From the NCBI GenBank assembly GCA_964019335.1, contig OZ025756.1:124001-188000 (forward strand): a stretch of DNA of 64,000 nt, in the 5' to 3' direction. The stretch comes from Diplonema japonicum (taxonomy: Eukaryota; Protista; Euglenozoa: Diplonemea). This document shows, one piece after another, positions 18,800 to 61,570 of the stretch. The notes beneath the pieces were generated by a model, which was given only the letters and a program-made list of their open reading frames with translations, was not told the origin of the DNA and ran no database searches. Made by a program: the position numbers and the translations under genes. Numbering within the stretch: the first letter of the stretch is position 1; the number at the start of each line of letters is the position of its first letter.

Positions 18800-20478
18800 A
18801 TCTCACACTAGACATTTCTTTGTTGTCAGGCAGAGTTACTTCGTGCAAACGTAGCTCAATGCCATTGGATGCTAAACGCAGACCACGATACACCACCTAA
18901 AGGCCGTCAATCTCACAAGGCTCGAAAGGGGAGGCATAGAAGCAAAGCACGTTCACCCGTTTCACAGGTGCAGTCTCAGAGCACAATGTCCCACCCATTG
19001 CAACGCCCGGTCCCATCACTGTCACATACTTCTGTCTCTTGCTCCCGAACGTCCCGTACACAATGCTGCTGGTCGAGGATCCCACATGGAAGGTGTATTC
19101 TCTTCACCGAAGGCGGTCCCGAGCACGGACACCCCAAGCATCTTCACAAACACCAACGAGTTCTCAACATGTGTGGTGTATGGTTTGGTGCAGTTCCAGC
19201 AGACAGCAACCCTGTTCCCCTGAAGCGACACCACTGCTCCGTGTGACCTCTCCGTGCATGTCGTATCTTCGAAAGCCCGGCATTCAAATACTCCCCTTCT
19301 GCTTCAGAACACGTTATTTCAATCATCCCGACAGTTGCGCAGTGGCATTTATGCAGATAACTAGTACCCTCACTCAATCGGCTGACGTTGTCGAAGGACC
19401 CACTCTTGCTGTCTTGTGGGGCCGCTCATCTTCCTGTCCTCCCTCTTCAGCTTAAGTTGTTGCTCAACAAAGGACTTCCTCCCAAGAAGGGAACGGGGGA
19501 GAAGGAAGGGTTTTAGTGAGTCACCCACACCCTTCAGTTCAATTTCCCCCATCGGGATGACAGAGACAGAGTCAAGGGGGCGAGTTGCCTGCATCACCTC
19601 AGGAGTGACAGTGTTGCCGTCGATCCTTGGATGTCGGTGAAGACCACCGAAGACATTTTTGACTGAAGTCCGAGAATGGGGATATCTTTTGTTTGCGCTG
19701 AGTTGTTGTGCATGTTGTGGAAGAGTGCATCGGGGAGGTAGGGGCGGTAGCCTTCGAGGTTTGAGAGGATAGCCATGAAAGACTCGTAAAGGGGAGGGGG
19801 AAGGGAGGCGGCTGAGATGATGTCCTCGGCTGAGACAAGGTCGAAGCGGGAGAGGGAGGTCGCGATGTCCTCTGTGGCGGCGATCACCTTGTTCATCTTG
19901 TCGTGTTCTTGCTGAAGACTGCGAGCGAAACCGTTCGTGAAGTAGAAATCGACTATGAACATAAGAATGTAACTAGCAGCGGGGGAAACAGCGTTGAGAA
20001 ATTCCTGTTTGCAAGGGAGAGAAGCACATGCCACGACGGTCCTTCTGAGAGACCGAAATGATACACAGCTTCGAAAATCAGAACTATCAGCCAGAGATTG
20101 AGAATGGTGAGCAGTACTTTTGCTGCACGGGGGGGCAGACGGACCGCAATGCTGGCATCAAATTAGGAGGATGAAAAACGGCCACTTCCGACTCCCATTG
20201 GAGAGAACAGTTTCTCTTAGATCCGCCGTTATCAGAACCCCCGCATGTATATACATAAGAATTTCAATAAGCCCCGGTCTGACCTTACGCTCGAGTAACA
20301 TTTGCAAGAACAGAACCAGCGCTGCAACGACCCCCACCAGTGACGACGCGTAGCGAAGGTTGGAAAATGCAATGAGGTGCGCGATACTCCCGCTGAAAGA
20401 ACCGATCGCCACTATTCTTTTTACGAAACCTGTTTGTGCATCGTCTGTGGGCCTCAGTAAATAGGCAAAGCATTTCAT
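18800..20478 (-). pseudogene. Adenylate cyclase pseudogene
   Basis: N-terminal TM region (RKWPFFILLI, then stop), DFYFTNGFA, FTDIQGSTAT fused directly to VTPEVM (catalytic core deleted near 19610), then a frameshifted second domain. Confidence 0.9.
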
Positions 20479-20603
20479 ATCTGTTGTTCTCCCCTCCCCA
20501 TCTGTTATTGCGTTGTGTTGACAAACAGGTTTCGCAGTCTCTCCATGAGTTTAGAGATTTACAAGAAAGGTCACAGAAAAATGCAAAAAAAAAAAAAAAA
20601 AAA

Positions 20604-20812
20604 GAGACTATTTAAGGGTGCCTGCAGTATGTGGCAGGGCGCCCTGCACAAGTATCGTCTACTTGATTACAGGGGGCGCGCCTCGGCCTAGTTGTAGCTT
20701 CTTCTGCGTTCCGCGTCGTGTCCTTAATGCGTGCGGTGTACAGCTCAACCCCAGCCATGGTGCCCCTGGTAACCAAGATTCTGAGCCCGTGCAGTTCGCT
20801 GCCTGTTCGTCA
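20604..20812 (+). repeat. Dispersed repeat family A copy, alternative left end, truncated
   Basis: ttaagggtgcctgcagtatgtggcagg joined to the family A body; stops just before the cyclase 3' motif. Confidence 0.85.
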
Positions 20813-20826
20813 AATTGATTCTATCC

Positions 20827-20868: not shown

Positions 20869-22992
20869 TTAGTGAGCTGCAAACTGTTCCACCCGAGTCA
20901 TCACCTCCACTTCCAGCAAGCGAAGTGAAGTCCCATCAGGTGCGCCACACGTGCCCTTTTCAGTGAAGATCATGTCTTCCATCGAAGAAATCTCAGAAAG
21001 AGAGCAGGCATAGTAGCACAGAACACCACATGAAACAGCATCGCTGCACAGTGAACTGCTCACCACCACACCAGTTCCAAGAACAGTCATGAATTTCTGT
21101 TTTCTGTCCCCCACCGTCCCATGAAAAATGGTGCTCGTCGACATCCCCACATGGATCGAGGCCTCACCCCCAAGGCCAGCAGACACCCCAAGCATCTTCA
21201 CAAACACCAACGAGTTCTCAACATGTGTGGGGCATGGTTTGGTGCAGTTCCAGCAGACAGCAACCCTGTTCCCCTGAAGCGACACCACTGCTCCGTGTGA
21301 CCTCTCCGTGCACGTCAGTATCCTTGCAAGCCCGTTGTTCACAATGGCACCGACTTCGCTGCCTGACTCGTAGCTCTTTAACGCAACCTCAACCTTCCCA
21401 ACAGTGGCACAGGTGTTGCGCTGCAACGCTTCGTTGCACCCGCCAAGAGAGTACACACTCTCTTTTGCTGAAACCAATGATACACGACTTGCAAGCTTGG
21501 CAGCTGCGAGTTTGTTGGGCTTTCTATTCTCCCTCTTCAGGAGGAGCTGCTGCTCAACAAAGGACGTCCTCCCAAGAAGGGATCGGGGGAGGAGAAGGAA
21601 GGGGTTCAGTGAGTCACCCACACCCTTCAGTTCAGTCGACCCCATCGGGATGACAGAGACAGAGTCAAGGGGACCAACAGCCTCCATCACCTCAGGAGTG
21701 ACAGCAACAGCCCCACCCACACAGACCCCTTCCATCCGAGCCGCCTTGTTCACAGTGTTCCCAAAGTAGTCGTACCTCCCTGTCAGGTTGTTCAGTTGTA
21801 ACGAAACATCACCACAGTGAACACCCACACGAACCCTGAGACCACACCAAGGGCCTTCAGCATCCCACGAACAGTGGTCAACAGTGTCCAAGAGCTCCTC
21901 AGGCCACACACTCTTCACAAGCCTCTCCTGAACAGACAGACCGAACCACACCGCATCAGAAGCACTCTCAAAGGCCACCATGAAGGAGTCCCCAATGGTC
22001 TTCACCTCGTACCCATTGTGCTCAGCGATGCAGTCCCGTATTGCCTGGTTGTGAACCTGAAGTCCCTCCTTCATCCCTTCTGGACATGCCTCCCATGTTG
22101 CCGTCGATCCTTGGATGTCGGTGAAGACAAGGGTTGCTCTCTCAGATTGAAGACCAGGTGGTGGGACTTCAGAATAGCACTTTTTGCTCTCGCTGTGCAT
22201 GCTGTGGAAGAGTGCATCGGGGAGGTAGGGGCGATAGTCCTTGAGGTTTGCAAGGATGTTGCTGAAGGCATCGTAAAGCGGAGGGGGGAGGGAGGCTGTT
22301 GAGATGATGGCCTCGGCTGCTTCAAGGTCGAAGTGGGAGAGGGAGGTCGCGATGTCCTCGGCGGCAATGACAACCTTATTCATATTTTCACGTTCTTGCT
22401 CAACGCTACGAGCGAAGCCTCTGGTGAAGTAGAAGTCGAGGAGGAAGACCATAATTTGGCCTAAGCAAGTGTTGAAAGCATCCAATACGTGACGCTTGCA
22501 GGGAAGGGTTGTGCAGTTATAAATCTCTCGGCGGTCTTCTTGTGAAGGGAGGTGAGAGAGGTCGAAAAGGCCAAATCGAAAAGAGCTCTCAAAAAACAAC
22601 AACACAAACCAGAGAAGAAGTGCTCCCACCAATGTTTTAGCGACGCGTGACTTAAATCGGCAAACAAGGCAGACATCAATAAGAAGTACGAAGAACGTCC
22701 AATCCCTGTTTTCCGAACTACGCGCCATCTGCCTAAGGTCTGCCAAAATCAATACACACCCCAGTGTGTATATCATTAACTCAAGTAACCCAGGTCGAAG
22801 GCGGCGTTCGACAAGGAGCTGCAAGAAGACTGCCGTTGAACTGCAGAATCCCAACACCGATGTAAAAGTCACTTTTTCAATCACAGAAATAAGAAAAGCT
22901 ATGCTTGCCCCAATGGTGCCTACCAGCAATGTCCTCTTCGAAAGAATGGTGTGCGGGCTGTCGTCTGAACGGATAGCACATTGAAAAAACAT
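20869..22992 (-). CDS. Polytopic class III adenylate cyclase with a C-terminal degenerate cyclase domain
   Basis: 707 aa; multi-TM N-terminus; FTDIQGST, EVKTIGDSFM, LRVRVGVHCG, YDYFGNTVNKAARME. Confidence 0.93.
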   Translation of the reverse strand: MFFQCAIRSDDSPHTILSKRTLLVGTIGASIAFLISVIEKVTFTSVLGFCSSTAVFLQLLVERRLRPGLLELMIYTLGCVLILADLRQMARSSENRDWTFFVLLIDVCLVCRFKSRVAKTLVGALLLWFVLLFFESSFRFGLFDLSHLPSQEDRREIYNCTTLPCKRHVLDAFNTCLGQIMVFLLDFYFTRGFARSVEQERENMNKVVIAAEDIATSLSHFDLEAAEAIISTASLPPPLYDAFSNILANLKDYRPYLPDALFHSMHSESKKCYSEVPPPGLQSERATLVFTDIQGSTATWEACPEGMKEGLQVHNQAIRDCIAEHNGYEVKTIGDSFMVAFESASDAVWFGLSVQERLVKSVWPEELLDTVDHCSWDAEGPWCGLRVRVGVHCGDVSLQLNNLTGRYDYFGNTVNKAARMEGVCVGGAVAVTPEVMEAVGPLDSVSVIPMGSTELKGVGDSLNPFLLLPRSLLGRTSFVEQQLLLKRENRKPNKLAAAKLASRVSLVSAKESVYSLGGCNEALQRNTCATVGKVEVALKSYESGSEVGAIVNNGLARILTCTERSHGAVVSLQGNRVAVCWNCTKPCPTHVENSLVFVKMLGVSAGLGGEASIHVGMSTSTIFHGTVGDRKQKFMTVLGTGVVVSSSLCSDAVSCGVLCYYACSLSEISSMEDMIFTEKGTCGAPDGTSLRLLEVEVMTRVEQFAAH

Positions 22993-23069: not shown

Positions 23070-23575
23070 TAGCCTTGCTGGAAAACAAAAAAAACTCAAA
23101 AAACAGAACGCTGGTTGCTCGTCGACATCCCCACATGGATCGAGGCCTCACCCCCAAGGCCAGCAGACACCCCAAGCATCTTCACAAACACCAACGAGTT
23201 CTCAACATGTGTGGGGCATGGTTTGGTGCAGTTCCAGCAGACAGCAACCCTGTTCCCCTGAAGCGACACCACTGCTCCGTGTGACCTCTCCGTGCACGTC
23301 AGTATCTTAGCACCCTTGAGCCACCCACCCCCTTCAGTTCAGTCTCCCCCATCGGGATGACAGAGACAGAGTCAAGGGGGCGTCCTGCTTCCATCACCTC
23401 AGGAGTGACAGCAACAGCCCCACCCACACAGACCCCTTCCATCCGAGCCGCCTTGTTCACAGTGTTCCCAAAGTAGTCGTACCTCCCTGTCAGGTTGATG
23501 AAGGCAACACCGATACTATAAAGAAGGAACTCTAGTATCACGTTGTCAGACCTGCGAATGACAAACAGCTGGTAT
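23070..23575 (-). pseudogene. Adenylate cyclase relic collapsed by multiple deletions
   Basis: Four collinear blocks (3' motif, second domain, end of catalytic domain, TM region) joined within ~500 bp. Confidence 0.9.
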
Positions 23576-24026: not shown

Positions 24027-26183
24027 TCAAAGAACAGAAAGCTGGTCCGATGATTCAAACTGTTCCACCCGAGTCATCACTTTTACTTCCAGCAAGCGAA
24101 GTGAAGTCCCATCAGGTGCGTCATATGTACCCTTTTCAGTGAAGCTCATATCTTTTGAAGAAGGCTCAGAAAGAGAGCAGGCATAGTAGCACAGAACACC
24201 ACATGAAACAGCATCGCTGCACAGTGAACTGCTCACCACCACACCAGTTCCAAGAACAGTCATGAATTTCTGTTTTCTGTCCCCCACTGTCCCGTGAAAC
24301 ATGGTGCTCGTCGACATCCCCACATGGATCGAGGCCTCACCCCCAAGGCCATTACCTAGTTCAGCGGTCATCCCAAGCATCTTCACAAACACCAACGAGT
24401 TCTCAACATGTGTGGGGCATGGTTTGGTGCAGTTCCAGCAGACAGCAACCCTGTTCCCCTGAAGCGACACCACTGCTCCGTGTGACCTCTCCGTGCACGT
24501 CAGTATCTTCGCAAGCCCAGCATTCATCTTTTTCATCACTTCACTTTTAGACTCGTAGTTCCTTAAAGCAAGCTCAACCTTCCCAACAGTGGCGGAGGTT
24601 CTCATAGACTGGCCGAGATAGCTCAGGCTATTCTCTTTGTCGTCTCGAAGAGATTTTGCCGACTCACTGCGACATATAATCAGTTTCCTTTCCTCCCTCT
24701 TCACGAAGAGCTGCTCTTCCACAAAGGACGTCCTCCCAAGAAGGGAACGGGGGAGGAGAAGGAAGGGGTTCAGTGAGTCACCCACACCCTTCAGTTCAGT
24801 CTGCCCCATCGGGATGACAGAGACAGAGTCAAGGGGACCAACAGCCTCCATCACCTCAGGAGTGACAGCAACAGCCCCACCCACACAAGCCCCTTCCATC
24901 CGAGCCGCCTTGTTCACAGTGTTCCCAAAGTAGTCGTACCTCCCTGTCAGGTTGTTCAGTTGTAACGAAACATCACCACAGTGAACACCCACACGAACCC
25001 TGAGACCACACCAAGGGCCTTCAGCATCCCACGAACAGTGGTCAACAGTGTCCAAGAGCTCCTCAGGCCACACACTCTTCACAAGCCTCTCCTGAACAGA
25101 CAGACCGAACCACACCGCATCAGAAGCACTCTCGAAGGCCACCATGAAAGCATCCCCAATGGTCTTCACCTCGTACCCATTGTGCTCAGCGATGCAGTCC
25201 CGTATTGCCTGGTTGTGAACCTGAAGTCCCTCTTGCATCCCTTCTGGACATGCCTCCCATGTTGCCGTCGATCCTTGGATGTCGGTGAAGACAAGGGTTG
25301 CTCTCTCAGATTGAAGACCAGGTGGTGGGACTTCTGAACAGTGCCTTTTGCCCTCGCTGTGCATGCTGTGGAAGAGTGCATCGGGGAGGTAGGGACGATA
25401 GTTCTTAAGGTTTGCAAGGATGTTGCTGAAGGCATCGTAAAGCGGAGGGGGGAGGGAGGCGGCTGAGATGATGTCCTCGGCTGCTTCAAGGTCGAAGCGG
25501 GAGAGGGAGGTCGCGATGTCCTCTGTGGCGGCGATCACTTTGTTCATCTTGTCGTGTTCTTTGTGCAGTTCAGAAGCGAAGCCTCGGGTGAAGTAGAAGT
25601 CGAGGAGGAAGATGGAAAGCTGTGTAAAGGTGGCTTCGAAAGTAGTCAAGTACTGTGTCTTGCAAGGTAGGGTGGAACACGATATGGACTCACGGCGCTG
25701 CTGCTGAGTGGAGAGCATTGAGAGGTCGAAGAGGCCAAAACGGTTGGTCTGCTCGACGTAAAGGATGGTGAACCAGACCACCAGGCCGATGATTGTGTTT
25801 ATGGGAACACGCTTAGGGAAGCGGCAGACAAGGCAGACATCTATGAGTACGACAAAAAAGGGCCATATTCTGTTTTCACTGCCCAGCGAAATCTCATACA
25901 AATCGCCACAGATGAAGGTAACACCGATACTGTAAATAAGGAACTCTAGTATCACGTTGTCAGACCTGCGAATGACAAACAGCTGGTACAACATTGGAAA
26001 CGCATTAAGAAGGCCAATAGTGCAAAACACCACCTCGATCTCAACCGGGTCGTTGAGAAGTATCAGGGCGTTCCCAATTAAAACGAACACCGTACCTATC
26101 AACAGAATCTTCTTGATGAAGACTTCATGTCGGTCGTCGCCCGGCCGTATAATATAGCTCAGCAACTTGTCTACGAACATCAT
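24027..26183 (-). CDS. Polytopic adenylate cyclase (MMFVDK subfamily)
   Basis: All catalytic motifs present; start at MMFVDK just downstream of a pyrimidine-rich AG. Confidence 0.93.
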   Translation of the reverse strand: MMFVDKLLSYIIRPGDDRHEVFIKKILLIGTVFVLIGNALILLNDPVEIEVVFCTIGLLNAFPMLYQLFVIRRSDNVILEFLIYSIGVTFICGDLYEISLGSENRIWPFFVVLIDVCLVCRFPKRVPINTIIGLVVWFTILYVEQTNRFGLFDLSMLSTQQQRRESISCSTLPCKTQYLTTFEATFTQLSIFLLDFYFTRGFASELHKEHDKMNKVIAATEDIATSLSRFDLEAAEDIISAASLPPPLYDAFSNILANLKNYRPYLPDALFHSMHSEGKRHCSEVPPPGLQSERATLVFTDIQGSTATWEACPEGMQEGLQVHNQAIRDCIAEHNGYEVKTIGDAFMVAFESASDAVWFGLSVQERLVKSVWPEELLDTVDHCSWDAEGPWCGLRVRVGVHCGDVSLQLNNLTGRYDYFGNTVNKAARMEGACVGGAVAVTPEVMEAVGPLDSVSVIPMGQTELKGVGDSLNPFLLLPRSLLGRTSFVEEQLFVKREERKLIICRSESAKSLRDDKENSLSYLGQSMRTSATVGKVELALRNYESKSEVMKKMNAGLAKILTCTERSHGAVVSLQGNRVAVCWNCTKPCPTHVENSLVFVKMLGMTAELGNGLGGEASIHVGMSTSTMFHGTVGDRKQKFMTVLGTGVVVSSSLCSDAVSCGVLCYYACSLSEPSSKDMSFTEKGTYDAPDGTSLRLLEVKVMTRVEQFESSDQLSVL

Positions 26184-27666: not shown

Positions 27667-29814
27667 TCAAAGAACAGAAAGCTGGTCCGATGATTCAAAC
27701 TGTTCCACCCGAGTCATCAACTCCACTTCCAACAAGCGAAGTGAAGTCCCATCAGGTGCGTCACACGTGCCCTTTTCAGTGAAGCTCATATCTTGCATCG
27801 AAGAAATCTCAGAAAGAGAGCAGGCATAGTAGCACAGAACACCACATGAAACAGCATCGCTGCACAGTGAACTGCTCACCACCACACCAGTTCCAAGAAC
27901 AGTCATGAATTTCTGTTTTCTGTCCCCCACCGTCCCATGAAACATGGTGCTCGTCGACATCCCCACATGGATCGAGGCCTCACCCCCAAGGCCAGCAGAC
28001 ACCCCAAGCATCTTCACAAACACCAACGAGTTCTCAACATGTGTGGGGCATAATTTAATACAATTCCAGCTCACTTGTACCTGGTTCCCCTGAAGTGACA
28101 CCACTGCTCCGTGTGACCTCTCCGTGCATGTCAGCATCTTCGCAAGCCAGGTATTCATCTTTTTCATCACTTCACTTTTAGACTCGTAGTTCCTTAAAGC
28201 AAGCTCAACCTTCCCAACAGTGGCGGAGGTTCTCATAACCTGGCTGAGATCGCCCGCGCTATTTTCTTTGTGGACGCCAAAGGATTTTTCCGACTCACTG
28301 CGACATATAATCAGTTTCCTGTCCTCTCTCTTCACGAAGAGCTGCTCTTCCACAAAGGACTTCCTCCCAAGAAGGGAACGAGGGAGGAGAAGGAAGGGGT
28401 TCAGTGAGTCACCCACACCCTTCAGTTCAGTCTGCCCCATCGGGATGACAGAGACAGAGTCAAGGGGACCAACAGCCTCCATCACCTCAGGAGTGACAGC
28501 AACAGCCCCACCCACACAAGCCCCTTCCATCCGAGCCGCCTTGTTCACAGTGTTCCCAAAGTAGTCGTACCTCCCTGTCAGGTTGTTCAGTTGTACCGAA
28601 ACATCACCACAGTGAACACCCACACGAACCCTGAGACCACACCAAGGGCCTTCAGCATCCCACGAACAGTGGTCAACAGTGTCCAAGAGCTCCTCAGGCC
28701 ACACACTGTTCACAAGCCTCTCCTGAACAGACAGACCGAACCACACCGCATCAGAAGCACTCTCAAAGGCCACCATGAAAGCATCCCCAATGGTCTTCAC
28801 CTCGTGCCCATTGTGCCCAGCGATGCAGTCCCGTATTGCCTGGTTGTGAACCTGAAGTCCCTCTTGCATCCCTTCTGGACATGCCTCCCATGTTGCCGTC
28901 GATCCTTGGATGTCGGTGAAGACAAGGCTTGCTCTCTCAGATTGAAGACCAGGTGGTGGGACTTCAGAGTACCGCCTTTTGCCCTCGCTGTGCATGTCGC
29001 GGAAGAGTGCATCGGGGAGGTAGGGGCGGTAAATCTCAAGGTTCTCAACAATGGTTTGGAAGGCATCGTAAAGCGGAGGGGGGAGGGAGGCGGCTGAGAT
29101 GATGGCCTCGGCTGAGACAAGGTCGAAGCGGGAGAGGGAGGTCGCGATGTCCTCTGTGGCGGCGATCACTTTGTTCATCTTGTCGTGTTCTTTGTGCAGT
29201 TCAGAAGCAAAGCCTCGAGTGAAGTAGAAGTCGAGGAGGAAGATGATAAGCTGTAAAAGGGTGGCTTCGAGAGTAGTCATGTACTGTACCTTGCAAGGTA
29301 GGGTGGAGCATGATGTAAACTCACGGCGTTGCTGCTGAGTGGAGAGAATTGAGAGGTCGAAGAGGCCAAAGCGGTTGGTCTGCTCGACGAAAAGGATGGT
29401 GAACCAGATCACCAGGCTGATGATGATGTTTATGGAAACACGCTTAGGGAGGCGGCAGACAAGGCACATGTCTATGAGGATGACAAAAAAGGGCCACCCT
29501 CTGTTGACACTATTCATAGATATCTCATGCAAATCGCCACAGAAGAAGTTAGCACCAATACCGTAAAAAAGGAACTCTAGTATCACGTTGTCAGACCTGC
29601 GAATGACAAACAGCTGGTACAACATTGGTAACAAAGTAAGGTAGTTAATAATGCAAAACACCATCTGTATTTGAACCGGGTCGTTCAAAAATATTATGGT
29701 GTTCCCAATTATAATACTCACCACGCACGTCATCAGAATCTTCTTGATGAAGACTTCATGTCGGTCGTCGCCCGGCCGTATAATATAGCTCAGCAACTTG
29801 TCTACGAACATCAT
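27667..29814 (-). CDS. Polytopic adenylate cyclase (MMFVDK subfamily)
   Basis: All catalytic motifs present; start by homology with paralogs. Confidence 0.93.
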   Translation of the reverse strand: MMFVDKLLSYIIRPGDDRHEVFIKKILMTCVVSIIIGNTIIFLNDPVQIQMVFCIINYLTLLPMLYQLFVIRRSDNVILEFLFYGIGANFFCGDLHEISMNSVNRGWPFFVILIDMCLVCRLPKRVSINIIISLVIWFTILFVEQTNRFGLFDLSILSTQQQRREFTSCSTLPCKVQYMTTLEATLLQLIIFLLDFYFTRGFASELHKEHDKMNKVIAATEDIATSLSRFDLVSAEAIISAASLPPPLYDAFQTIVENLEIYRPYLPDALFRDMHSEGKRRYSEVPPPGLQSERASLVFTDIQGSTATWEACPEGMQEGLQVHNQAIRDCIAGHNGHEVKTIGDAFMVAFESASDAVWFGLSVQERLVNSVWPEELLDTVDHCSWDAEGPWCGLRVRVGVHCGDVSVQLNNLTGRYDYFGNTVNKAARMEGACVGGAVAVTPEVMEAVGPLDSVSVIPMGQTELKGVGDSLNPFLLLPRSLLGRKSFVEEQLFVKREDRKLIICRSESEKSFGVHKENSAGDLSQVMRTSATVGKVELALRNYESKSEVMKKMNTWLAKMLTCTERSHGAVVSLQGNQVQVSWNCIKLCPTHVENSLVFVKMLGVSAGLGGEASIHVGMSTSTMFHGTVGDRKQKFMTVLGTGVVVSSSLCSDAVSCGVLCYYACSLSEISSMQDMSFTEKGTCDAPDGTSLRLLEVELMTRVEQFESSDQLSVL

Positions 29815-52589: not shown

Positions 52590-54734
52590 TTATTGTTCGC
52601 TATTAAATGGGAGGACTAGCTGGGCCTTGTCATCAGAGCTCACAAGATATGCCTTCTGCATGGACACCTCGCCAGGTACTTCGAAGGTACTTTCCCGCAG
52701 TATGCTGAGACCATCGATGCCGAATAGCTCGTAGGGTGAAGCATAACAGCACAGAACACCACTGGATATAGCATCACAGCAAAGTGAACTGCTCACCACC
52801 ACACCAGTTCCAAGAACAGTCACAAACAGCTGCCTTTTGCTGCCCACCGTCCCATGAAACATGGTGCTCGTCGACATCCCCACATGGATCGAGGCCTCAC
52901 CCCCAAAGTCAGCGGACACCCCAAGCATCTTCACAAACACCAACGAGTTCTCAACATGTGTGGGGCATGGTTTGGTGCAGTTCCAGCAGACAGCAACCCT
53001 GTTCCCCTGAAGCGACACCACTGCTCCGTGTGACCTCTCCGTGCACGTCAGTATCTTCGACATGCAGATATTCATTGTGCTCCCAATAAGGTGAGCCTCG
53101 TAGCTCCTAAGCACAATCTCAACCTTCCCAACAGTGGCAGTGCTCTGTTGCAGAATATTTGCAAAACTCCAGGAGCCATTGTACGACGGACTGGAGCTGG
53201 CAGTGTCGGAGACTAAGTTGTTGGGAATGTCAGTTGATACTTCTAACTTCCTGTCCTCCCTCTTCAGGAGGAGCTGCTGCTCAACAAAGGACTTCCGTTT
53301 GATTAGATTTTGAGGGACAAGAAGGAAGGGGTTTATCACACCACCCACACCCTTCAGCTCAGTCTGCCCCATCGGGATGACAGAGACAGAGTCAAGAGGA
53401 CCAACAGCCCCCATCACCTCAGGAGTGACAGCAACAGCCCCACCCACACAAGCCCCTTCCATCCGAGCCGCCTTGTTCACAGTGTTCCCAAAGTAGTCGT
53501 ACCTCCCTGTCAAGTTGTTCAGTTGTACCGAAACATCACCACAGTGAACACCCACACGAACCCTGAGACCACACCAAGGGCCTTCAGCATCCCACGAACA
53601 GTGGTCAACAGTGTCCAAGAGCTCCTCAGGCCACACACTGTTCACAAGCCTCTCCTGAACAGACAGACCGAACCACACCGCATCAGAAGTACTCTCGAAG
53701 GCCACCATGAAGGAGTCCCCAATGGTCTTCACCTCGTACCCATTGTGCTCAGCGATGCAGTCCCGTATTGCCTGGTTATGAACTTGAAGTCCCTCCTTCA
53801 TTCCTTCTGGACATGCCTCCCATGTTGCCGTCGATCCTTGGATGTCGGTGAAGACAAGGCTTGCTTGTCTTGTCGTCAATCCCGGTGCTGGTGCCTCTCT
53901 GGGTGTGCGCACTTCGCTGTGGAGCTCGTGGAAGAGTGCATCGGGGAGGTAGGGGCGATACATCTCAAGGTTGGTGAGGATCTCGCAGAAAGCGTTATAA
54001 AGGGGAGGGGGGAGGGAGGCGGTTGAGATGATGTCCTCGGCTGCCTCAAGGTCGAAGCGGGAGAGGGAGGTCGCGATTTCCTCTGTGGCGGCGATCACCT
54101 TGTTCATCTTCTCGTGTTGTACATGAAGGCCGTTCGCGAAGCCTCGGGTGAAGTAGAAGTCGAGGAGGAAAATTAAAAGCTGTCCAACAAAAATCCGGAC
54201 GCTACGTGAAATCGACACGGGGCAGGGGAGGTGGGAGCATTCACAGGACTCTCGGCGCTGCTCTTGGGAGCTGAGGAACCAAATGTCGTAAAGGCCAAAA
54301 CGATACACGTTTTCCAGCGATAGGAAGCAAAACCAGCTAGTCAAGAGGATCACTAAAGTAGTGGCAACACGATTGTCCACCCGGCATACAAGGCAGAGAT
54401 CGACTAAGACGACGAAGTAGGGCCACGACCTGTCGTGGTTTTGCACCACCAGAAGCAAGTCAGACAGCAACAGGGAAACACCCATAAATAATATCCAGGC
54501 TACCATTATGCGCCGCCGAAGCTTCTTTTCGATTAGCATCTGCAGGAAAAAAGCGAAGGACAAAACGGCCGTCACTACTCTGTGAACTCGCAACGACGGG
54601 TTGCCGCGAGCCAAGGATACTGCACCATAATATGCCGAGGCGGATGCGCTGGCCACCAACATCACTTTTTTACTAAAGGCAATCGAGGGGTCGTCCGTTG
54701 GCAGCACAACACGCTCGAACGGAAAGAGTAGCAT
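52590..54734 (-). CDS. Polytopic adenylate cyclase
   Basis: 714 aa; all motifs. Confidence 0.93.
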   Translation of the reverse strand: MLLFPFERVVLPTDDPSIAFSKKVMLVASASASAYYGAVSLARGNPSLRVHRVVTAVLSFAFFLQMLIEKKLRRRIMVAWILFMGVSLLLSDLLLVVQNHDRSWPYFVVLVDLCLVCRVDNRVATTLVILLTSWFCFLSLENVYRFGLYDIWFLSSQEQRRESCECSHLPCPVSISRSVRIFVGQLLIFLLDFYFTRGFANGLHVQHEKMNKVIAATEEIATSLSRFDLEAAEDIISTASLPPPLYNAFCEILTNLEMYRPYLPDALFHELHSEVRTPREAPAPGLTTRQASLVFTDIQGSTATWEACPEGMKEGLQVHNQAIRDCIAEHNGYEVKTIGDSFMVAFESTSDAVWFGLSVQERLVNSVWPEELLDTVDHCSWDAEGPWCGLRVRVGVHCGDVSVQLNNLTGRYDYFGNTVNKAARMEGACVGGAVAVTPEVMGAVGPLDSVSVIPMGQTELKGVGGVINPFLLVPQNLIKRKSFVEQQLLLKREDRKLEVSTDIPNNLVSDTASSSPSYNGSWSFANILQQSTATVGKVEIVLRSYEAHLIGSTMNICMSKILTCTERSHGAVVSLQGNRVAVCWNCTKPCPTHVENSLVFVKMLGVSADFGGEASIHVGMSTSTMFHGTVGSKRQLFVTVLGTGVVVSSSLCCDAISSGVLCCYASPYELFGIDGLSILRESTFEVPGEVSMQKAYLVSSDDKAQLVLPFNSEQ

Positions 54735-54835: not shown

Positions 54836-56980
54836 CTAAGTAAACTGACGAACAGAAATCGTCTCATCGCACTGCAGTTCTATATGCACCAGATGCATCA
54901 TTGCCCCATTAGGTGCCTCCTGGTTCCCTTGTTTCGACATGTTTAGCCCCTCTAGATCTGTCAGATCGAAGGGAGTGGCAAAATAGCACAAAACACAACA
55001 ACGAATGGCATCGCTGCACAGTGAACTGCTCACCACCACACCAGTTCCAAGAACAGTCACAAACTTCTGCCTCTTGTCCCCCACCGTCCCGTGAAACATG
55101 GTGCTCGTCGACATCCCCACATGGATCGAGGCTGCACCCCCAAGGTCAGACACCCCAAGCATCCTCACAAACACCAACGAGTTCTCAACATGTGTGGGGC
55201 ATGGTTTGGTGCAGTTCCAGCTGACGGCGATCCTGTTCCCCTGAAGCGACACCACTGCTCCGTGTGACCTCTCCGTGCATGTCAGTATCTTAGCAAGCCC
55301 AGTATGCATCGTATAACTCACTTCGCTGCCTGACTCGTAGCTCCCAAGTACAAATTCCGCATGGCTAACAGTGGCGGAGATGCTGTGCTGAAGGGGAGTA
55401 AGTTTCCACGAGTGGTAGGTTATAGAGCTGTCCTCGGTATCACATCTTGCGGAGGAGTGCACAGTTGATGCTGGTGAGTGGGGTGCCTCATTGCTACATG
55501 TCCTGTCCTCCCTCTTCAGCTTAAGTTGTTGCTCCACAAAGGACTTCCTCTCAAGAAGGGAACGGGGGAGAAGAAGGGAGGGGTATATCACACCACCCAC
55601 ACCCTTCAGTTCAGTCGCCCCCATCGGGATGACAGAGACAGAGTCAAGGGGACCAACAGCCTCCATCACCTCAGAAGTGACAGCAACAGCCCCACCCACA
55701 CAGACCCCTTCCATCCGAGCCGCCTTGTTCACAGTGTTCCCAAAGTAGTCGTACCTCCCTGTCAGGGTGTTCAGTTGTACCGAAACATCACCACAGTGAA
55801 CACCCACACGAACCCTGAGACCACACCAAGGGCCTTCAGGCCGCCACGTACAGTGTTCGAGTGTCAGAAGCTCCTCAGGCCACACACTGTTCACAAGCCT
55901 CTCCTGAACAGACAGACCGAACCACACCGCATCAGAAGCACTCTCAAAGGCCACCATGAAGGAGTCCCCAATGGTCTTCACCTCGTACCCATTGTGCTCA
56001 GCGATGCAGTCCCGTATTGCCTGGTTGTGAACCTGAAGTCCCTCCTTCATCCCTTCTGGACATGCCTCCCATGTTGCCGTCGATCCTTGGATGTCGGTGA
56101 AGACAAGGGTTACCCTTTCGGACTTCAGTCCAGGAACGGGAACGTCTAGTTCAGGTGGGCCCTCGCTGTGCATGTTGTGGAAGAGTGCATCGGGGAGGTA
56201 GGGGCGGTAAATCTCAAGGTTTTCAAGAATCTTGTTGAAAGACTCGTAAAGGGGAGGGGGGAGGGAGGCTGTTGAGATGATGGCCTCGGCTGAGACAAGG
56301 TCGAAGCGGGAGAGGGAGGTCGCGATGTCCTCTGTGGCGGCGATCACTTTGTTCATCTTGTCGTGTTCTGTGTGAAGACCAACAGCGAAGCCTCGGGTGA
56401 AGTAGAAGTCGAGGAGGAAGACCAGAACCTGCCCAAAGTAGGCAGGTACAGCTGTGGTATACCCCACAGGGCAAGGAAGGGTGACGCAGTCGCAAGCCTC
56501 TCGGCGGTTTTCCTGCGAGTCAAAGAAGGGTAGGTCGAAGATGCCGAAGCGATGGGTGGTTTCGAAGAAGAGAATGGTCAGCCAGACAATCAAAGATATT
56601 ATTAAAGCAGTGGCAACCCGGCTGTCAAGGCGGCAGACAAGGCAGATGTCTATGAGGACGACAAAGAAGGGCCACGACCTGTTGCCTTGGTTCTGCGCTG
56701 CAAGGTATGCGTCAGCCGACAAGAACATTGCACCTAAAAACCCCAACCAAGCCACCATCACAGCGTGCCGAAGCTTTCTTTCAACCACAATCTGCACGAG
56801 GAAAAAAAGCGATAGAAAAGTGATTCCGAACCTCCGCCACCAGATGTACTGTGCAGCAGGGATAAGCAGCGACAATCCATAGTACGTAGAACACGACACA
56901 CACGAAATGATAACAACCTTCCTTCGAAAAGCAGTCAGCGAATTGTCAGACTCTCTCCAAAGCTCCTTTAACAAAGGCAT
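54836..56980 (-). CDS. Polytopic adenylate cyclase
   Basis: Start MPLLKELW after an A-rich run; all motifs. Confidence 0.92.
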   Translation of the reverse strand: MPLLKELWRESDNSLTAFRRKVVIISCVSCSTYYGLSLLIPAAQYIWWRRFGITFLSLFFLVQIVVERKLRHAVMVAWLGFLGAMFLSADAYLAAQNQGNRSWPFFVVLIDICLVCRLDSRVATALIISLIVWLTILFFETTHRFGIFDLPFFDSQENRREACDCVTLPCPVGYTTAVPAYFGQVLVFLLDFYFTRGFAVGLHTEHDKMNKVIAATEDIATSLSRFDLVSAEAIISTASLPPPLYESFNKILENLEIYRPYLPDALFHNMHSEGPPELDVPVPGLKSERVTLVFTDIQGSTATWEACPEGMKEGLQVHNQAIRDCIAEHNGYEVKTIGDSFMVAFESASDAVWFGLSVQERLVNSVWPEELLTLEHCTWRPEGPWCGLRVRVGVHCGDVSVQLNTLTGRYDYFGNTVNKAARMEGVCVGGAVAVTSEVMEAVGPLDSVSVIPMGATELKGVGGVIYPSLLLPRSLLERKSFVEQQLKLKREDRTCSNEAPHSPASTVHSSARCDTEDSSITYHSWKLTPLQHSISATVSHAEFVLGSYESGSEVSYTMHTGLAKILTCTERSHGAVVSLQGNRIAVSWNCTKPCPTHVENSLVFVRMLGVSDLGGAASIHVGMSTSTMFHGTVGDKRQKFVTVLGTGVVVSSSLCSDAIRCCVLCYFATPFDLTDLEGLNMSKQGNQEAPNGAMMHLVHIELQCDETISVRQFT

Positions 56981-57119: not shown

Positions 57120-59315
57120 TTAAAAATTAAAAGAATTGCTGGAAAGCAACTCACCCCCACTATTCTGTGTTAAGTCTGCGTTCATCTCCTCGACACTATC
57201 GAATACTTGGACTACTGTTATGATGGACTCCGCAGCACACATTGGGAACGCATCAACCTCCCAGCAACATCGAGGTCCGTCAGGTGCCTCGTGGCTACCT
57301 TTTGCTGTGATTTTGACTCCAACAGGTACTTTCGTTAGCTCGAAGGGGGAAGCATAGTAGCACAGAACACCACTGCATACAGCAGCGCTACACATTTTGT
57401 TACTCACCACCACATCAATCCCAAGAACGGTTACAAACTTCTGTCTGTTGTCCCCCACCGTCCCGTGAAACATGGTGCTCGTCGACATCCCCACATGGAT
57501 CGAGGCCTCACCCCCAAGGTCAGACACCCCAAGCATCCTCACAAACACCAACGAGTTCTCAACATGTGTGGTGCATGGTCTCATACAGTTCCAGCTTATT
57601 TGTACCAGGTTCCCCTGAAGCGACACCACTGCTCCGTGTGACCTCTCCGTGCACGTCAGTATCTTCGCAAGCCCGGTATTCATCGCACTACCCACTTCGC
57701 TGCCTGACTCGTAGCTCCCAAGCAGAATTTCAACCTTTCCAACAGTGCCTGAAGTGCTTTGCAGCACATCAGCCGATGTGGCAATACCGCAGCATGTTGC
57801 TTGAGATGGTTTCGGTCTTCTTATTCTCTTCACATCGAACCCCCTATCCCCTCTGTCTAACAATAGTTGCTGTTTGGCAAATAGTTTCCTCCCAAGAAGG
57901 GAACAGGGGAGAAGAAGTGAGGGGCTTATCACACCACCCACACCCTTCAGTTTAGTCCCCATCGGGATGACAGAGACAGAGTCAAGGGGACCAACAGCCT
58001 CCATCACCTCAGGAGTGACAGCAACAGCCCCACCCACACAAGCCCCTTCCATCCGAGCCGCCTTGTTCACAGTGTTCCCAAAGTAGTCGTACCTCCCTGT
58101 CAGGTTGTTCAGTTGTACCGAAACATCACCACAGTGAACACCCACACGAACCCTGAGACCACACCAAGGGCCTTCAGCATCCCACCAACAGCAGTTCAGT
58201 GTCAGAAGCTCTTCGGGCCACACACTCTTCAGAAGCCTCTCCTGAACAGACAGACCAAACCACACCGCATCAGAAGTACTCTCGAAGGCCACCATGAAGG
58301 AGTCCCCAATGGTCTTCACCTCGTACCCATTGTGCTCAGCGATGCAGTCCCGTATTGCCTTGTTGTGAACCTGAAGTCCCTCCTTCATCCCTTCTGGACA
58401 TGCCTCCCATGTTGCCGTCGATCCTTGGATGTCGGTGAAGACAAGGGTTGCTTGTCTTGTCGTCAATCCCGGTGCTGGTGCCTCTCTGGGTGTGCGCACT
58501 TCGCTGTGGAGCTCGTGGAAGAGTGCATCGGGGAGGTAGGGGCGGTATATCTCAAGGTTGGTGAGAATTCTGCTGAAGGCATCGTAAAGGGGAGGGGGGA
58601 GGGAGGCCGTTGAGATGATGGCCTTGGCTGAGACGAGGTCGAAGCGGGAGAGGGAGGTCGCGATGTCCTCTGTGGTAACAATCACCTTGTTCATCTTGTC
58701 GTGTTCTTTGTAAAAACCGACAGCGAAGAAGCGGGTGAAGTACAAATCGAAGAGGATGACTGCAGCTTGACTAACGAAAGTTTGAAGGTTTCGCGCAAAG
58801 CTCACAGGGCAAGGGAGGTCGGCACAGTTAACAGTAGAACGACGATCTTCCTGTGACTCAAGGAAGGAGAGGTCGTAGAGGCCAAAACGGTACCTGTTCT
58901 CGAGGAAGAGAACGAATAGCCAAGTGCACACGGTTGTGACAAGGCATGTGAACACATGGCTGTCGAGACGGCAGACGAAACTAAGATCAATTAGGAGGAC
59001 GAATACCGGCCAAGCCCTTCCAAGGCCACCAGTGACAAGGAAAAGGTCCGCAACAAGAACCATGACACCCCATAAAACAATCCACGCACCAACGAAGACC
59101 GACCGCAGCTTCCTCTCAATCAAGATCTGCAAGAAGACCGGCAGTGACACGACAGACACAAGCAGCCTGTAGGGCAACGCGATGTTTGAAGCCACTAAAA
59201 ACAACAACGAGAAAGCAACACTTATTAGAGACGCAATAAGTAAGACCCGCTTGCTGAGGGCTGTCATTCGGTCATCCGTCGGAAGCACAGCGTGTGTGAA
59301 CAGGAAGCATCGCAT
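57120..59315 (-). CDS. Polytopic adenylate cyclase
   Basis: 731 aa; all motifs. Confidence 0.93.
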   Translation of the reverse strand: MRCFLFTHAVLPTDDRMTALSKRVLLIASLISVAFSLLFLVASNIALPYRLLVSVVSLPVFLQILIERKLRSVFVGAWIVLWGVMVLVADLFLVTGGLGRAWPVFVLLIDLSFVCRLDSHVFTCLVTTVCTWLFVLFLENRYRFGLYDLSFLESQEDRRSTVNCADLPCPVSFARNLQTFVSQAAVILFDLYFTRFFAVGFYKEHDKMNKVIVTTEDIATSLSRFDLVSAKAIISTASLPPPLYDAFSRILTNLEIYRPYLPDALFHELHSEVRTPREAPAPGLTTRQATLVFTDIQGSTATWEACPEGMKEGLQVHNKAIRDCIAEHNGYEVKTIGDSFMVAFESTSDAVWFGLSVQERLLKSVWPEELLTLNCCWWDAEGPWCGLRVRVGVHCGDVSVQLNNLTGRYDYFGNTVNKAARMEGACVGGAVAVTPEVMEAVGPLDSVSVIPMGTKLKGVGGVISPSLLLPCSLLGRKLFAKQQLLLDRGDRGFDVKRIRRPKPSQATCCGIATSADVLQSTSGTVGKVEILLGSYESGSEVGSAMNTGLAKILTCTERSHGAVVSLQGNLVQISWNCMRPCTTHVENSLVFVRMLGVSDLGGEASIHVGMSTSTMFHGTVGDNRQKFVTVLGIDVVVSNKMCSAAVCSGVLCYYASPFELTKVPVGVKITAKGSHEAPDGPRCCWEVDAFPMCAAESIITVVQVFDSVEEMNADLTQNSGGELLSSNSFNF

Positions 59316-59416
59316 GTTTAGCCCTCAATTTCTTTGTTTACATGTAGATAACATCATGATTGGGTGGGGTAAAAATGTCGTTTATTACACAAAGTGGCGC
59401 TAGAAAGCTACCTGCC

Positions 59417-61570
59417 CTATTGGCCAGAGAGAGAGCGTACAAGCGTTGAAGCATCGTCATACACCGCGAGCTCTACCCGCTTCATGTGTGTGCCGTCGGG
59501 AGTTGCATAAGGACTGCTATTCTTCATGGATAGCCCTTGCATCTCTGCGAGGTCAAAGACAGAGGCATAGTAGCACAGAACGTTATTGGCAACGGCATCG
59601 CTGCACAGTGAACTGCTCACCACCACACCAGTTCCAAGAACAGTCATGAACTTCTGTCGATTGCCCCCTACCGTCCCGTGGTAAACTTTGCTCGTCGAGA
59701 TCCCCATGGAGATCATTGCCTCACTCCAAGAAGAAACCCCAAGCATCTTCACAAACACAAACGCATTCTCAACATGTGTGGAACATGGTTTGGTGCAGTT
59801 CCAGCTCACCTGTACCTGGTTCCCCTGAAGCGACACCACTGCTCCGTGTGACCTCTCCGTGCACGTCAGTATCTTAGCAAGCCCAGCATTCATTACCATA
59901 GCTACACTTGCGGACGAATCGTAACTCCCAAGCACTACCTCAACTTTCCCGATTGTAGCGGAAGTGCTCTGTTGAAAGAGATTGAGCATTGAGGTGCTGC
60001 TCCCTTGGCTTGAGATCGTCTGTTCTGATCCGTGCATGGAGACTATTCTCGGAAGAAGGGTATTATCCGACACGCATAACTTGCCTTCAGTTCGGTTTAA
60101 CAAGTGCTGCTCCACAAAGGACGTCCTCCCAAGAAGGGAACGGGGGAGGAGAAGGAAGGGGTTTATTGAGCCACCCACACCCTTCAGTTCAGTCTGCCCC
60201 ATCGGGATGACAGAGACAGAGTCAAGGGGACCAGCTGCCTCCATCACCTCAGGAGTGACAGCAACAGCCCCACCCACACAAGCCCCTTCCATCCGAGCCG
60301 CCTTGTTCACAGTGTTCCCAAAGTAGTCGTACCTCCCTGTCAGGTTGTTCAGTTGTACCGAAACATCACCACAGTGAACACCCACACGAACCCTGAGACC
60401 ACACCAAGGGCCTTCGGACTTCCGCTTACAGGACTCGAGATCTAAAAGCTCCTCAGGCCACACACTGTTCACAAGCCTCTCCTGAACAGACAGACCAAAC
60501 CACACCGCATCAGAAGTACTCTCGAAGGCCACCATGAAAGCATCCCCAATGGTCTTCACCTCGTACCCATTGTGCTCAGCGATGCAGTCCCGTATTGCCT
60601 GGTTGTGAACCTGAAGTCCCTCCTTCATCCCTTCTGGACATGCCTCCCATGTTGCCGTCGATCCTTGGATGTCGGTGAAGACGAGGGAAGCGTTCTGTGA
60701 CTGTAACCCGGGTGCCGGGATGTCCTTTCTATGTGCGTAACTCTCGCTGTGCATGCTGTGGAAGAGTGCATCGGGGAGGTAGGGGCGGTAGTCCTTCAGA
60801 TTTTCAAGGATTGTGCTGAAGGCATCGTAAAGGGGAGGGGGGAGGGAGGCGGTTGAGATGATGGCCTTGGCTGAGACAAGGTCGAAGCGGGAGAGGGAGG
60901 TCGCGATGTCCTCTGTGGCGGCGATCACCTTGTTCATCTTGTCGTGTTCTTTACGAAGGCCATGCGCGAAGCCTCGGGTGAAGTAGAAGTCGAGGAGAAA
61001 CACAGCTACTTGCCCTGCGAACAACTCCGTACTGAGTGAGAAACCAATAGCGCAGGGGATCTCGGCACAGTCGACTCTCGAGCGACGATCTTCCTGTGAC
61101 TCGAGGAAGGAGAGGTCGTAGAGGCCAAAGCGGTAGGCGTTCTCGAAGAAGGTAATGAACAACCAAGTAACTATCATGAAGATGAGACCGGTAGCCACGC
61201 GGCTATCGAGCCGGCTGACAAGGCAGATATCGACCAGAAGGACGAAACTGGGCCACGTCCGTGTGTGGTTGCCCTCTACGATCAAATCCAAGTCAGACAC
61301 AACTAGCACAGCACCCATTAAATACATCCACACACTGATTACACCTGTGCGCAGCCGCCGCTCCAGCATCATCTGCAAGAAGACTACGAGCGACACGACG
61401 CTGATGAACAGCCTTCTCCACCACACGTGCGGGAGGGAATCGTGCAGAAGCAGGAAAGAGTCAACTATGAAGATGCACAGAGTTGCAATCACCATGATCT
61501 TCTTGCTGAAAACTGTATGCGCGTCGTCCGTTGGTACTACTGCGCGTGTGAACAGGAAACACGGAGGCAT
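59417..61570 (-). CDS. Polytopic adenylate cyclase
   Basis: 717 aa; all motifs. Confidence 0.93.
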   Translation of the reverse strand: MPPCFLFTRAVVPTDDAHTVFSKKIMVIATLCIFIVDSFLLLHDSLPHVWWRRLFISVVSLVVFLQMMLERRLRTGVISVWMYLMGAVLVVSDLDLIVEGNHTRTWPSFVLLVDICLVSRLDSRVATGLIFMIVTWLFITFFENAYRFGLYDLSFLESQEDRRSRVDCAEIPCAIGFSLSTELFAGQVAVFLLDFYFTRGFAHGLRKEHDKMNKVIAATEDIATSLSRFDLVSAKAIISTASLPPPLYDAFSTILENLKDYRPYLPDALFHSMHSESYAHRKDIPAPGLQSQNASLVFTDIQGSTATWEACPEGMKEGLQVHNQAIRDCIAEHNGYEVKTIGDAFMVAFESTSDAVWFGLSVQERLVNSVWPEELLDLESCKRKSEGPWCGLRVRVGVHCGDVSVQLNNLTGRYDYFGNTVNKAARMEGACVGGAVAVTPEVMEAAGPLDSVSVIPMGQTELKGVGGSINPFLLLPRSLLGRTSFVEQHLLNRTEGKLCVSDNTLLPRIVSMHGSEQTISSQGSSTSMLNLFQQSTSATIGKVEVVLGSYDSSASVAMVMNAGLAKILTCTERSHGAVVSLQGNQVQVSWNCTKPCSTHVENAFVFVKMLGVSSWSEAMISMGISTSKVYHGTVGGNRQKFMTVLGTGVVVSSSLCSDAVANNVLCYYASVFDLAEMQGLSMKNSSPYATPDGTHMKRVELAVYDDASTLVRSLSGQ

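Follow-up and report, generated by a model that had tools for sequence, protein, structure and literature searches.

The active site of class III cyclases spans a head-to-tail dimer, in which one domain provides the metal-binding aspartates and the other the base-recognising and transition-state residues (PMC6027212). In the ESAG4/GRESAG4 cyclases of trypanosomatids, all six catalytic residues are located in a single domain, so that homodimerisation is needed. The GRESAG4 catalytic domain of Trypanosoma brucei crystallises as a monomer although its activity requires dimerisation, and the trypanosome catalytic domain dimerises weakly and is activated 20-fold by a C-terminal leucine (GCN4) zipper (PMC6027212). 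The mycobacterial cyclase Rv1625c/Cya, regarded as 'half' of a mammalian transmembrane adenylate cyclase (tmAC), is an obligate homodimer in which six transmembrane (TM) helices are connected to one complete catalytic domain by a helical linker containing a transducer element (PMC9433096). Finally, tmACs and the soluble adenylate cyclase (sAC) contain two domains of the class III cyclase fold per chain, C1 and C2, whose split residues complement each other in one active site, the other, degenerate site serving regulation. Here, we describe a tandem array of cyclase genes in a window of 64,000 nucleotides from the genome of the diplonemid Diplonema japonicum (contig OZ025756.1, positions 124,001 to 188,000; positions below are those of the window). 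The array encodes six-helix membrane proteins in which a first cyclase domain, D1, predicted to be catalytic, is followed by a second domain, D2, a conserved pseudo-enzyme of cyclase fold.

The proteins encoded by the array share some features with each of these systems. As is the case for ESAG4/GRESAG4, they form a large tandem euglenozoan family combining conserved catalytic parts with variable, here putative, sensor parts (PMC6027212). However, the trypanosomatid enzymes have a large extracellular domain resembling periplasmic binding proteins, a single TM helix, and only about 110 variable residues downstream of the catalytic domain, whereas the array proteins cross the membrane with six helices, expose hardly any ectodomain, and carry in addition a whole second cyclase domain, which is dead. 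The six TM helices, the helical linker, and the single complete catalytic domain are shared with Rv1625c/Cya, although the transducer of the array proteins is recognised by geometry and motif only and their homodimerisation is likely by analogy. In contrast, Cya has no second cyclase domain, which is present in 13 of the 14 array genes. No sequence similarity between the TM modules of Cya and of the array proteins was found with Pfam or in the Atlas. With tmAC and sAC, the array proteins have in common the presence of two cyclase-fold domains per chain, and Foldseek aligned approximately 460 columns of the array protein model to sAC and to the soluble parts of AC9. The difference is that D1 holds all six residues whereas D2 has none of them, so that a pair formed by the two domains in cis would be dead.

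An array of fourteen membrane-bound cyclase genes

Fourteen co-oriented long open reading frames (ORFs), of 707-762 amino acids (aa) in the ORF list, occupied positions 20869-61570 of the minus strand. Alignment of the 14 frames identified 13 full-length paralogues (g1 to g8 and g10 to g14). The same number had been given by a sequence-only reading of the window, which had also proposed a shared layout consisting of a multi-TM N-terminus, a linker with RPY(L/I)PDALF, a catalytic domain, a variable linker, and a second domain. This layout was seen in the alignment: all copies comprised a hydrophobic N-terminus, the element YRPY(L/I)PDALF, D1, and a variable linker, followed by D2 in all genes except g9. 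The latter gene retained the TM module and D1 but D2 was replaced by an unrelated C-terminal tail of 58 aa. This gene could be a variant devoid of D2 or a pseudogene. Searching the window with g1 (tblastn) revealed three broken relics in addition to the 14 frames. The exemplar, g1, was modelled in full length with AlphaFold using an alignment of 82 homologues (mean predicted local distance difference test, pLDDT, of 89.4; predicted template modelling score, pTM, of 0.57). The coordinates of g2 were set from the conserved ATG. The features of the array are the following, with their basis in parentheses.

20869-22992, minus strand: g1, intact, 707 aa, six TM helices, a linker resembling the cyclase transducer element (CTE), D1 and D2; modelled exemplar (ORF, Pfam, AlphaFold pLDDT 89.4)
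22336-22956, minus strand: six TM helices of g1, residues 13-219 (hydropathy, DSSP of the model, conservation)
22195-22248, minus strand: transducer-like element of g1, residues 249-266, NL..YRPYLPDALFHSM (invariance in the array, near-invariance in 82 homologues, secondary structure, CTE geometry as in PMC5995499)
21583-22152, minus strand: D1 of g1, residues 281-470, predicted catalytic class III cyclase domain (PF00211 with E 8e-32, 1fx4 with E 1.2e-29 and Z 26.7, residue census)
21424-21582, minus strand: interdomain linker of g1, residues 471-523 (variable length and sequence, predicted disorder at 493-520)
20893-21423, minus strand: D2 of g1, residues 524-700, dead cyclase-fold domain (profile, AlphaFold, Foldseek, VIA-align, residue census)
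24027-26183, minus strand: g2, intact paralogue (ORF and alignment)
27667-29814, minus strand: g3, intact paralogue (ORF and alignment)
30200-32329, minus strand: g4, intact paralogue (ORF and alignment)
32714-34831, minus strand: g5, intact paralogue (ORF and alignment)
35325-37463, minus strand: g6, intact paralogue (ORF and alignment)
37700-39865, minus strand: g7, intact paralogue (ORF and alignment)
43663-45786, minus strand: g8, intact paralogue (ORF and alignment)
45985-47661, minus strand: g9, open frame of 558 aa with six TM helices, linker and D1, no D2 (alignment, tblastn)
49838-51988, minus strand: g10, intact paralogue (ORF and alignment)
52590-54734, minus strand: g11, intact paralogue (ORF and alignment)
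54836-56980, minus strand: g12, intact paralogue (ORF and alignment)
57120-59315, minus strand: g13, intact paralogue (ORF and alignment)
59417-61570, minus strand: g14, intact paralogue (ORF and alignment)
18837-20469, minus strand: pseudogene copy in pieces in three frames, with internal stops and the D1 core (residues 300-407) deleted (tblastn)
23117-23514, minus strand: relic comprising the end of D1 and part of D2 (tblastn, repeat families)
32498-32629, minus strand: relic of a C-terminal tail (tblastn)

D1 has the residues of a complete class III cyclase domain

D1 matched the Pfam family PF00211 in the seven genes that were tested, with E values of 1e-29 to 1e-33 and scores of 101-116 bits for a cut-off of 21.9. 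The motifs FTD, VKT, IGD, YDY, and NKAAR were invariant across the array. In g1, these motifs provide the metal-binding aspartates D292 and D335, the substrate-binding residues K331 and D408, and the transition-state residues N415 and R419, the register having been checked against 1FX4. A residue census of diplonemid homologues revealed that this set was kept in 82 of 82 sequences, the asparagine being present in 80. The attribution of all six canonical residues to the first domain, made by the sequence-only reading, therefore holds for the array and beyond it. The solved structures nearest to D1 were the catalytic domains of T. brucei GRESAG4.3 and GRESAG4.1 (1FX2 and 1FX4; E 1.2e-29); superposition gave a Z score of 26.7 and a root-mean-square deviation (rmsd) of 2.1 Å over 206 residues sharing 34% identity. 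Judged from its residues, D1 is a fully equipped class III adenylate cyclase domain, which is predicted to be catalytically competent.

The insert located between alpha3 and beta4 of D1 (residues 361-386) was approximately 20 residues shorter than in 1FX4. Positions 21820-21910 of the window and the paralogous places in the other genes (D1 residues 361-390) formed the sole variable patch of an otherwise near-identical domain. The variants of this insert (DTVDHCSWDAE versus TLNCCS, and others) had a mosaic distribution among the genes. The insert corresponds to the 'delta subdomain' of the trypanosome enzymes, which is a proposed allosteric site.

D2 has a cyclase fold and a residue signature of its own

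D2 contained the motifs HGAVVSLQGN, IHVG, HGTVG, and TVLG. Searched alone against Pfam, its best score was 13.6 bits (E 0.051), below the cut-off of 21.9, and four of the five copies had no match. More sensitive comparisons were based on profiles. The profile built from the 13 D2 copies of the array had a collinear match to the green-algal guanylate cyclase domain 3et6 (E 0.0016). A wider profile was obtained from 40 D2 sequences comprising paralogues from the whole genome, down to 25% identity. It retrieved 47 distinct sequences from the PDB at E <= 1, all but one of which (46/47) were class III cyclases, the best matches extending over the whole domain (sAC, 4e-6; the photoactivated cyclase OaPAC, 1.1e-5).

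Structure prediction led to the same assignment. The AlphaFold model of D2 alone had a pLDDT of 92.8 and a pTM of 0.89, and cyclase catalytic domains accounted for each of its top 50 Foldseek matches in the PDB (3et6_B with E 3.5e-11 and a template-modelling score of 0.74). Alignment with VIA-align gave Z scores of 19.7 for CyaC (1wc1_A, 173 residues) and 19.6 for CyaB, and 24 cyclase-fold chains ranked ahead of the first GGDEF and Palm domains (Z of about 10-11). The cyclase-like ATP-binding pseudoenzyme 6yii had a Z score of 12.7.

To locate the equivalents of the catalytic residues, the register was deduced from the HMMER alignment to 3et6, one hhalign segment, and the match of the secondary structures of D1 and D2 in the model, all of which agreed. 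The position of the substrate-binding lysine (K331) is occupied by S571 (S, T, or A in 76 of 82 sequences), that of the second metal-binding aspartate (D335) by N575 (N, S, or A), and that of the substrate-binding aspartate (D408) by T636 (T in 64 of 82). The equivalents of N415 and R419 are unconserved positions. For the first metal-binding aspartate the register is ambiguous, the equivalent being G532 or E535. The latter residue is invariant in the array, but this position is acidic in only 37 of 82 diplonemid sequences. The sequence-only reading had attributed to D2 a cyclase-like fold devoid of the six residues. Both statements fit these results, with the reservation that the first metal position is ambiguous.

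D2 was not merely deprived of these residues but displayed a signature of its own, comprising W581 (82/82), G567 (79/82), H590 (78/82), N582 (76/82), and F634 (74/82). The best-conserved stretch was the beta4-beta5 arm (G..G.V..G.VG...Q.F.T.LG), which is also the part that matched solved cyclases. Since D2 is conserved across diplonemids with its own residue signature, we conclude that it is a conserved pseudo-enzyme domain of the cyclase fold rather than a decaying relic. D2 was closer to domains of the sAC, photoactivated cyclase, and soluble guanylate cyclase types than to its trypanosome-type neighbour D1. No significant match between D2 and the D1 domains of the same family was detected by profile-profile comparison (hhalign and local runs), and only LGTGVVVSSSL and FGNTVNKAARM were aligned. 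The origin of D2 by a recent duplication of D1 is thus unsupported.

The membrane module and its transducer-like linker

According to the model of g1, the TM helices comprise residues 13-39, 43-62, 67-90, 99-110, 115-138, and 169-219, in agreement with hydropathy. The sixth helix extends into the cytosol and is followed by additional linker helices. The loop formed by residues 139-168, located outside, was the only sizeable loop; it was conserved and contained two cysteines. At the end of the linker, the model showed a kink at YRPYLP followed by a short helix (DALFHSM) that abuts D1. The corresponding element, YRPY(L/I)PDALF, was invariant in the array and nearly so in the 82 homologues. A helix, a kink, and a short helix also define the geometry of the CTE of class III cyclases (PMC5995499). 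Based on geometry and motif resemblance only, the linker of the array proteins thus resembles a CTE. Pfam did not recognise any domain on the N-terminal side of D1 in the seven genes tested. For the TM module, feature searches of the Atlas returned only leads below 0.9 to bacterial membrane sensors of the MASE type, which were not counted as evidence.

The D1-D2 cassette is widespread in diplonemids

The genome of D. japonicum (62.5 Mb) contained at least 150 scored D2 matches among 284 first-look candidates, nearly all of which were located in open frames of 700-1000 aa organised in tandem arrays on many contigs. The full-length g1 query gave 449 first-look candidates. Beyond this genome, the D2 profile was compared with 1.84 billion cluster representatives and retrieved 3094 proteins at E <= 0.001, including 584 at E <= 1e-10. 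Among the 150 matches listed, almost all full-length proteins carried D2 in their C-terminal part. In longer members, D1 and D2 were preceded by ammonium-transporter, PA, laminin-G-like, or solute-binding domains. The presence of D1-D2 behind varied sensor domains indicates that it is a general output cassette of diplonemids.

Full-length homologues were found in Diplonema papillatum, D. ambulator, D. japonicum, Rhynchopus humris, Lacrimia, Hemistasia, and Sulcionema, the D. papillatum homologue being annotated only as 'Adenylate cyclase'. D1 was followed by D2 in 103 of the 120 best matches to g1. The 17 remaining matches were proteins from Bodo saltans, Euglena, and bacteria, some unnamed environmental proteins, and truncated sequences; the D1-D2 cassette was absent from the Bodo, Euglena, and bacterial proteins sampled in this set. 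The relevant comparison set for the array is composed of diplonemids rather than trypanosomes. The literature on diplonemid cyclases, on tandem or inactive cyclase domains, and on RAC-B of Leishmania, a reported dominant-negative precedent on which we do not rely, did not contain any description of the D1-D2 architecture that we could find. The sequence-only reading had called for a survey of euglenozoans to judge novelty; among the matches retrieved, the cassette was located in five diplonemid genera. The layout is genuine and frequent in diplonemids, and no earlier description of it seems to exist.

Homogenisation of D1 and D2 by gene conversion and divergence of the first TM helices

Synonymous divergence varied approximately tenfold along the genes. 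The number of synonymous substitutions per site (dS) reached 1.59 for the TM part and 1.2 for the interdomain linker, compared with 0.14 for D1 and 0.27 for D2, and the mean nucleotide distances were 0.43, 0.07, and 0.14 for the TM part, D1, and D2, respectively. The nearest neighbour of a gene differed from segment to segment. In addition, identical tracts of up to 278 nucleotides were shared by genes that were about 46% divergent in their TM parts, such as g1 and g10 or g8 and g12. Identical tracts and segment-specific neighbours, in spite of divergent TM parts, indicate segmental conversion of D1 and D2. These results show that gene conversion homogenises the two domains across the array. 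Recent gene duplication was ruled out as the source of the similarity of D1, as the same pairs were 43-46% divergent in the TM part.

The ratio of nonsynonymous to synonymous substitution rates (dN/dS) was determined by region in the young clade formed by g2 to g7, in which dS is not saturated. The ratio was 0.96 for TM1-TM3, 0.35 for TM4-TM5, 0.27 for the outside loop, 0.78 for TM6 and the cytosolic helix, 0.33 for the linker, 0.45 for D1, and 0.47 for D2. TM1-TM3 is thus a hypervariable, putative input module, due either to relaxed constraint or to diversifying selection. If the proteins are sensors, their variable surface would be intramembrane, since little is exposed outside the membrane and the sizeable loop (139-168) is conserved. 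A uniform output cassette combined with fast-diverging TM1-TM3 helices would connect many input variants to one output. The proposal that the array is a chemoreceptor-like repertoire is accordingly only suggested by these data: the hypervariability of TM1-TM3 (dN/dS of about 0.96) speaks for it, whereas almost nothing is exposed except a conserved loop of 30 residues.

How D1 and D2 may work together

D1 holds both sets of catalytic residues and D2 holds neither. Consequently, a D1:D2 pair would have no complete active site and a D1:D1 pair would have two. Since all six residues are conserved in D1, a D1:D1 state must occur. The earlier argument that D2 cannot complement D1 is thus logically sound, and the residue census implies that catalysis would need the pairing of two D1 domains.

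To our knowledge, the two domains pair with each other in all well-known tandem cyclase-domain proteins (tmAC and sAC; PMC6027212). The tether connecting D1 to D2 is disordered at residues 493-520 of the model and is variable in length and sequence among paralogues. In addition, an intact ORF of 599 aa located 2.3 kb past the end of the window (C109:190333-192129) encodes the same six-TM module and YRPYLP linker directly followed by a D2-like domain. This ORF matched the D2 profile (3e-16) but not significantly the D1 profile (E 0.053, score -0.8), and had no match in Pfam. It fits the notion that D2-type domains take the position of a cyclase partner, and would represent a 'decoy' variant. 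The pairing of known tandem domains, the flexibility of the tether, and the existence of the D1-less ORF are the reasons why we tentatively favour D2 acting as a competitor for the dimer face of D1, i.e. as an autoinhibitory partner.

According to this model, two chains would assemble through their six-helix membrane modules and helical linkers, so that their D1 domains would be placed head to tail. Only this arrangement provides complete active sites, of which there would be two. D2, carried by its flexible tether, would serve as a cyclase-type partner with a regulatory role. In the resting state, it would occupy the dimer face of D1, either in cis or in the other chain, in a pair devoid of a complete site. 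A change in the membrane module, transmitted by the linker and the transducer-like kink, would favour the D1:D1 pair and the synthesis of cyclic AMP (cAMP). The data show the anatomy of the proteins, their fold, the residue pattern, its conservation, and the mosaic evolution; we infer that the chains dimerise, which way regulation runs, and that the TM module has a sensing role.

Four observations weigh against the competitor model. First, the AlphaFold monomer does not dock D1 on D2 in the manner of C1:C2 of tmAC and sAC, and its pTM is only 0.57. Second, the two-domain chains of sAC and AC9 superpose on one domain only (template-modelling score of about 0.3, rmsd >22 Å). Third, by analogy with the 20-fold activation obtained with a zipper (PMC6027212), a dimerising D2 at the C-terminus could equally well be an activator. 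Finally, no array gene was present in the transcriptome-derived proteome of D. japonicum.

The third of these points leads to an opposite role, in which D2 is a positive clamp or an allosteric module. In a constitutive homodimer, a D1:D1 pair would be stacked with a D2:D2 pair. The latter would help to hold the weakly dimerising D1 domains together or, alternatively, would tune activity through a small ligand (a nucleotide or an anion, for example) bound in its degenerate pockets. Weak dimerisation of the trypanosome-type domain and its activation by a C-terminal GCN4 zipper (PMC6027212) speak for this model, coiled-coil or CTE-like geometry would enforce the pairing of D1 with D1, and the lack of docking of D1 on D2 in the AlphaFold model is in agreement with it. 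The conserved non-catalytic signature of D2 (W-N, H, S/T571, and T636) surrounds the former pocket, and a cyclase-like pseudoenzyme that binds ATP, 6yii, provides a precedent. However, the residues that would line a pocket, those aligned with Asn and Arg, vary among D2 sequences, and the D1-less variant is explained no better than by inhibition. We regard the clamp as possible, though somewhat doubtful. We lean to the competitor; the data do not decide between the two.

Regulation in cis by a dead copy of a domain located next to a live one is known for the JH2-JH1 pair of JAK kinases and for degenerate GGDEF domains beside EAL. This is an analogy only, as folds and chemistry differ from those of the array cyclases. 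A more elaborate version of competition would be a partner-swap switch, in which the tethered dead domain would sequester the live one in a pair devoid of a site until its release allows two live domains to pair. D1-less members and D2-less members such as g9 would then act as dominant-negative and unrestrained partners, respectively, and the hundreds of paralogues would form a combinatorial network of heterodimerising sensors. We consider this extension speculative and rather doubtful.

D2 could also be a docking or targeting platform, directing the protein to a flagellar or membrane sub-location or recruiting partner proteins, with no direct effect on the pairing of D1. The region of trypanosome cyclases on the C-terminal side of the catalytic domain indeed contains a targeting signal and phosphosites (PMC6027212), and the surface signature of D2 is conserved independently of catalysis. 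This role is nonetheless unlikely: a full, conserved cyclase fold with an intact dimer arm exceeds the needs of a targeting signal, the trypanosome region (about 110 aa) is too short for a cyclase domain, and the D2 profile found nothing in the cyclase of Bodo saltans, the one kinetoplastid protein tested.

Expression of the array genes

As for the proteome, a search with a paralogue-specific N-terminus did not detect any transcript fragment. A paralogue located elsewhere (C61:156288-158441) matched a D. japonicum transcript with 100% identity over 718 residues, which identifies the genome as that of D. japonicum and leads us to reject a kinetoplastid origin. The contigs of four sequencing runs, none of which is on record as RNA, also covered intergenic DNA, so that no expression signal could be read from them. 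The missing transcripts may result from differential expression or from the collapse of near-identical paralogues during assembly. They could also indicate that the array is mostly a silent reservoir of intact genes that are not or rarely expressed and exchange sequence by conversion with expressed paralogues elsewhere. Conversion tracts of up to 278 nucleotides, the relics and the LINE-like insertion found within the array, and the contrast with the expressed C61 paralogue would fit such a reservoir. However, 13 long frames are open and dN/dS is below 1 in D1, D2, and the linker; moreover, Trinity may fail with near-identical paralogues and the transcriptome was obtained in one culture condition only. 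A silent reservoir is therefore an improbable account of the array. Even less credible is the idea that an ancestral two-domain cyclase left D2 behind as a relic devoid of function: the loss of every catalytic residue and the lack of recognition by Pfam are outweighed by its retention in 103 of the 120 best full-length matches to g1, in four named diplonemid genera with Lacrimia as a fifth, by invariant positions, by a confidently predicted fold (pLDDT 92.8), and by a dN/dS of 0.47.

Surroundings of the array and embedded elements

The array is split between g7 and g8 by a 5'-truncated, dispersed element resembling long interspersed nuclear elements (LINE-like; 41497-43024, minus strand). This element contains two ORFs, neither of which had a match in Pfam. 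One of them (41497-42327) is the 3' part of a high-copy element with 1118 first-look candidates in the genome, many copies being about 95% identical in frames of 1640 aa. Directly downstream of the g1 stop codon, the summed contig word depth of a segment of about 200 nucleotides (20599-20797) exceeded that of adjacent bins about 100- to 10,000-fold in each of the four runs. This segment is a very high-copy repeat, possibly an element similar to short interspersed nuclear elements. Upstream of g9 (47662-48177), the frame remained open across low-complexity repeats, (FP)n, (RF)n, and poly-Lys; this region is probably non-coding simple sequence and not an N-terminal extension of g9. Rfam had no match in the window.

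The array is flanked by minus-strand genes at positions 5112-6305, 8741-9826, 13599-14708, 15621-17141, and 62294-63397. Their products are two FkbM-type methyltransferases, a metallo-beta-lactamase resembling glyoxalase II, an HSP70-like protein, and an ankyrin-repeat protein. Their location on the same strand as the array would fit a gene cluster that is long and co-directional.

Significance for diplonemid biology

Few groups of marine heterotrophic flagellates match diplonemids in abundance and diversity, and the way in which diplonemids sense their surroundings is hardly known. At least 150 loci of the D. japonicum genome are devoted to the D1-D2 output cassette. Current annotation calls a single cyclase domain in these proteins and leaves approximately 180 conserved residues unexplained. 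The mosaic pattern of the array provides a clear case of a receptor family diversifying its input while the output is fixed. The order of the domains, a catalytic domain predicted to be competent followed by a dead one, is unlike the build of the well-studied tandem cyclases. If D2 gates dimerisation, the array would exemplify a novel principle of class III cyclase regulation, based on a natural, tethered pseudo-enzyme partner.

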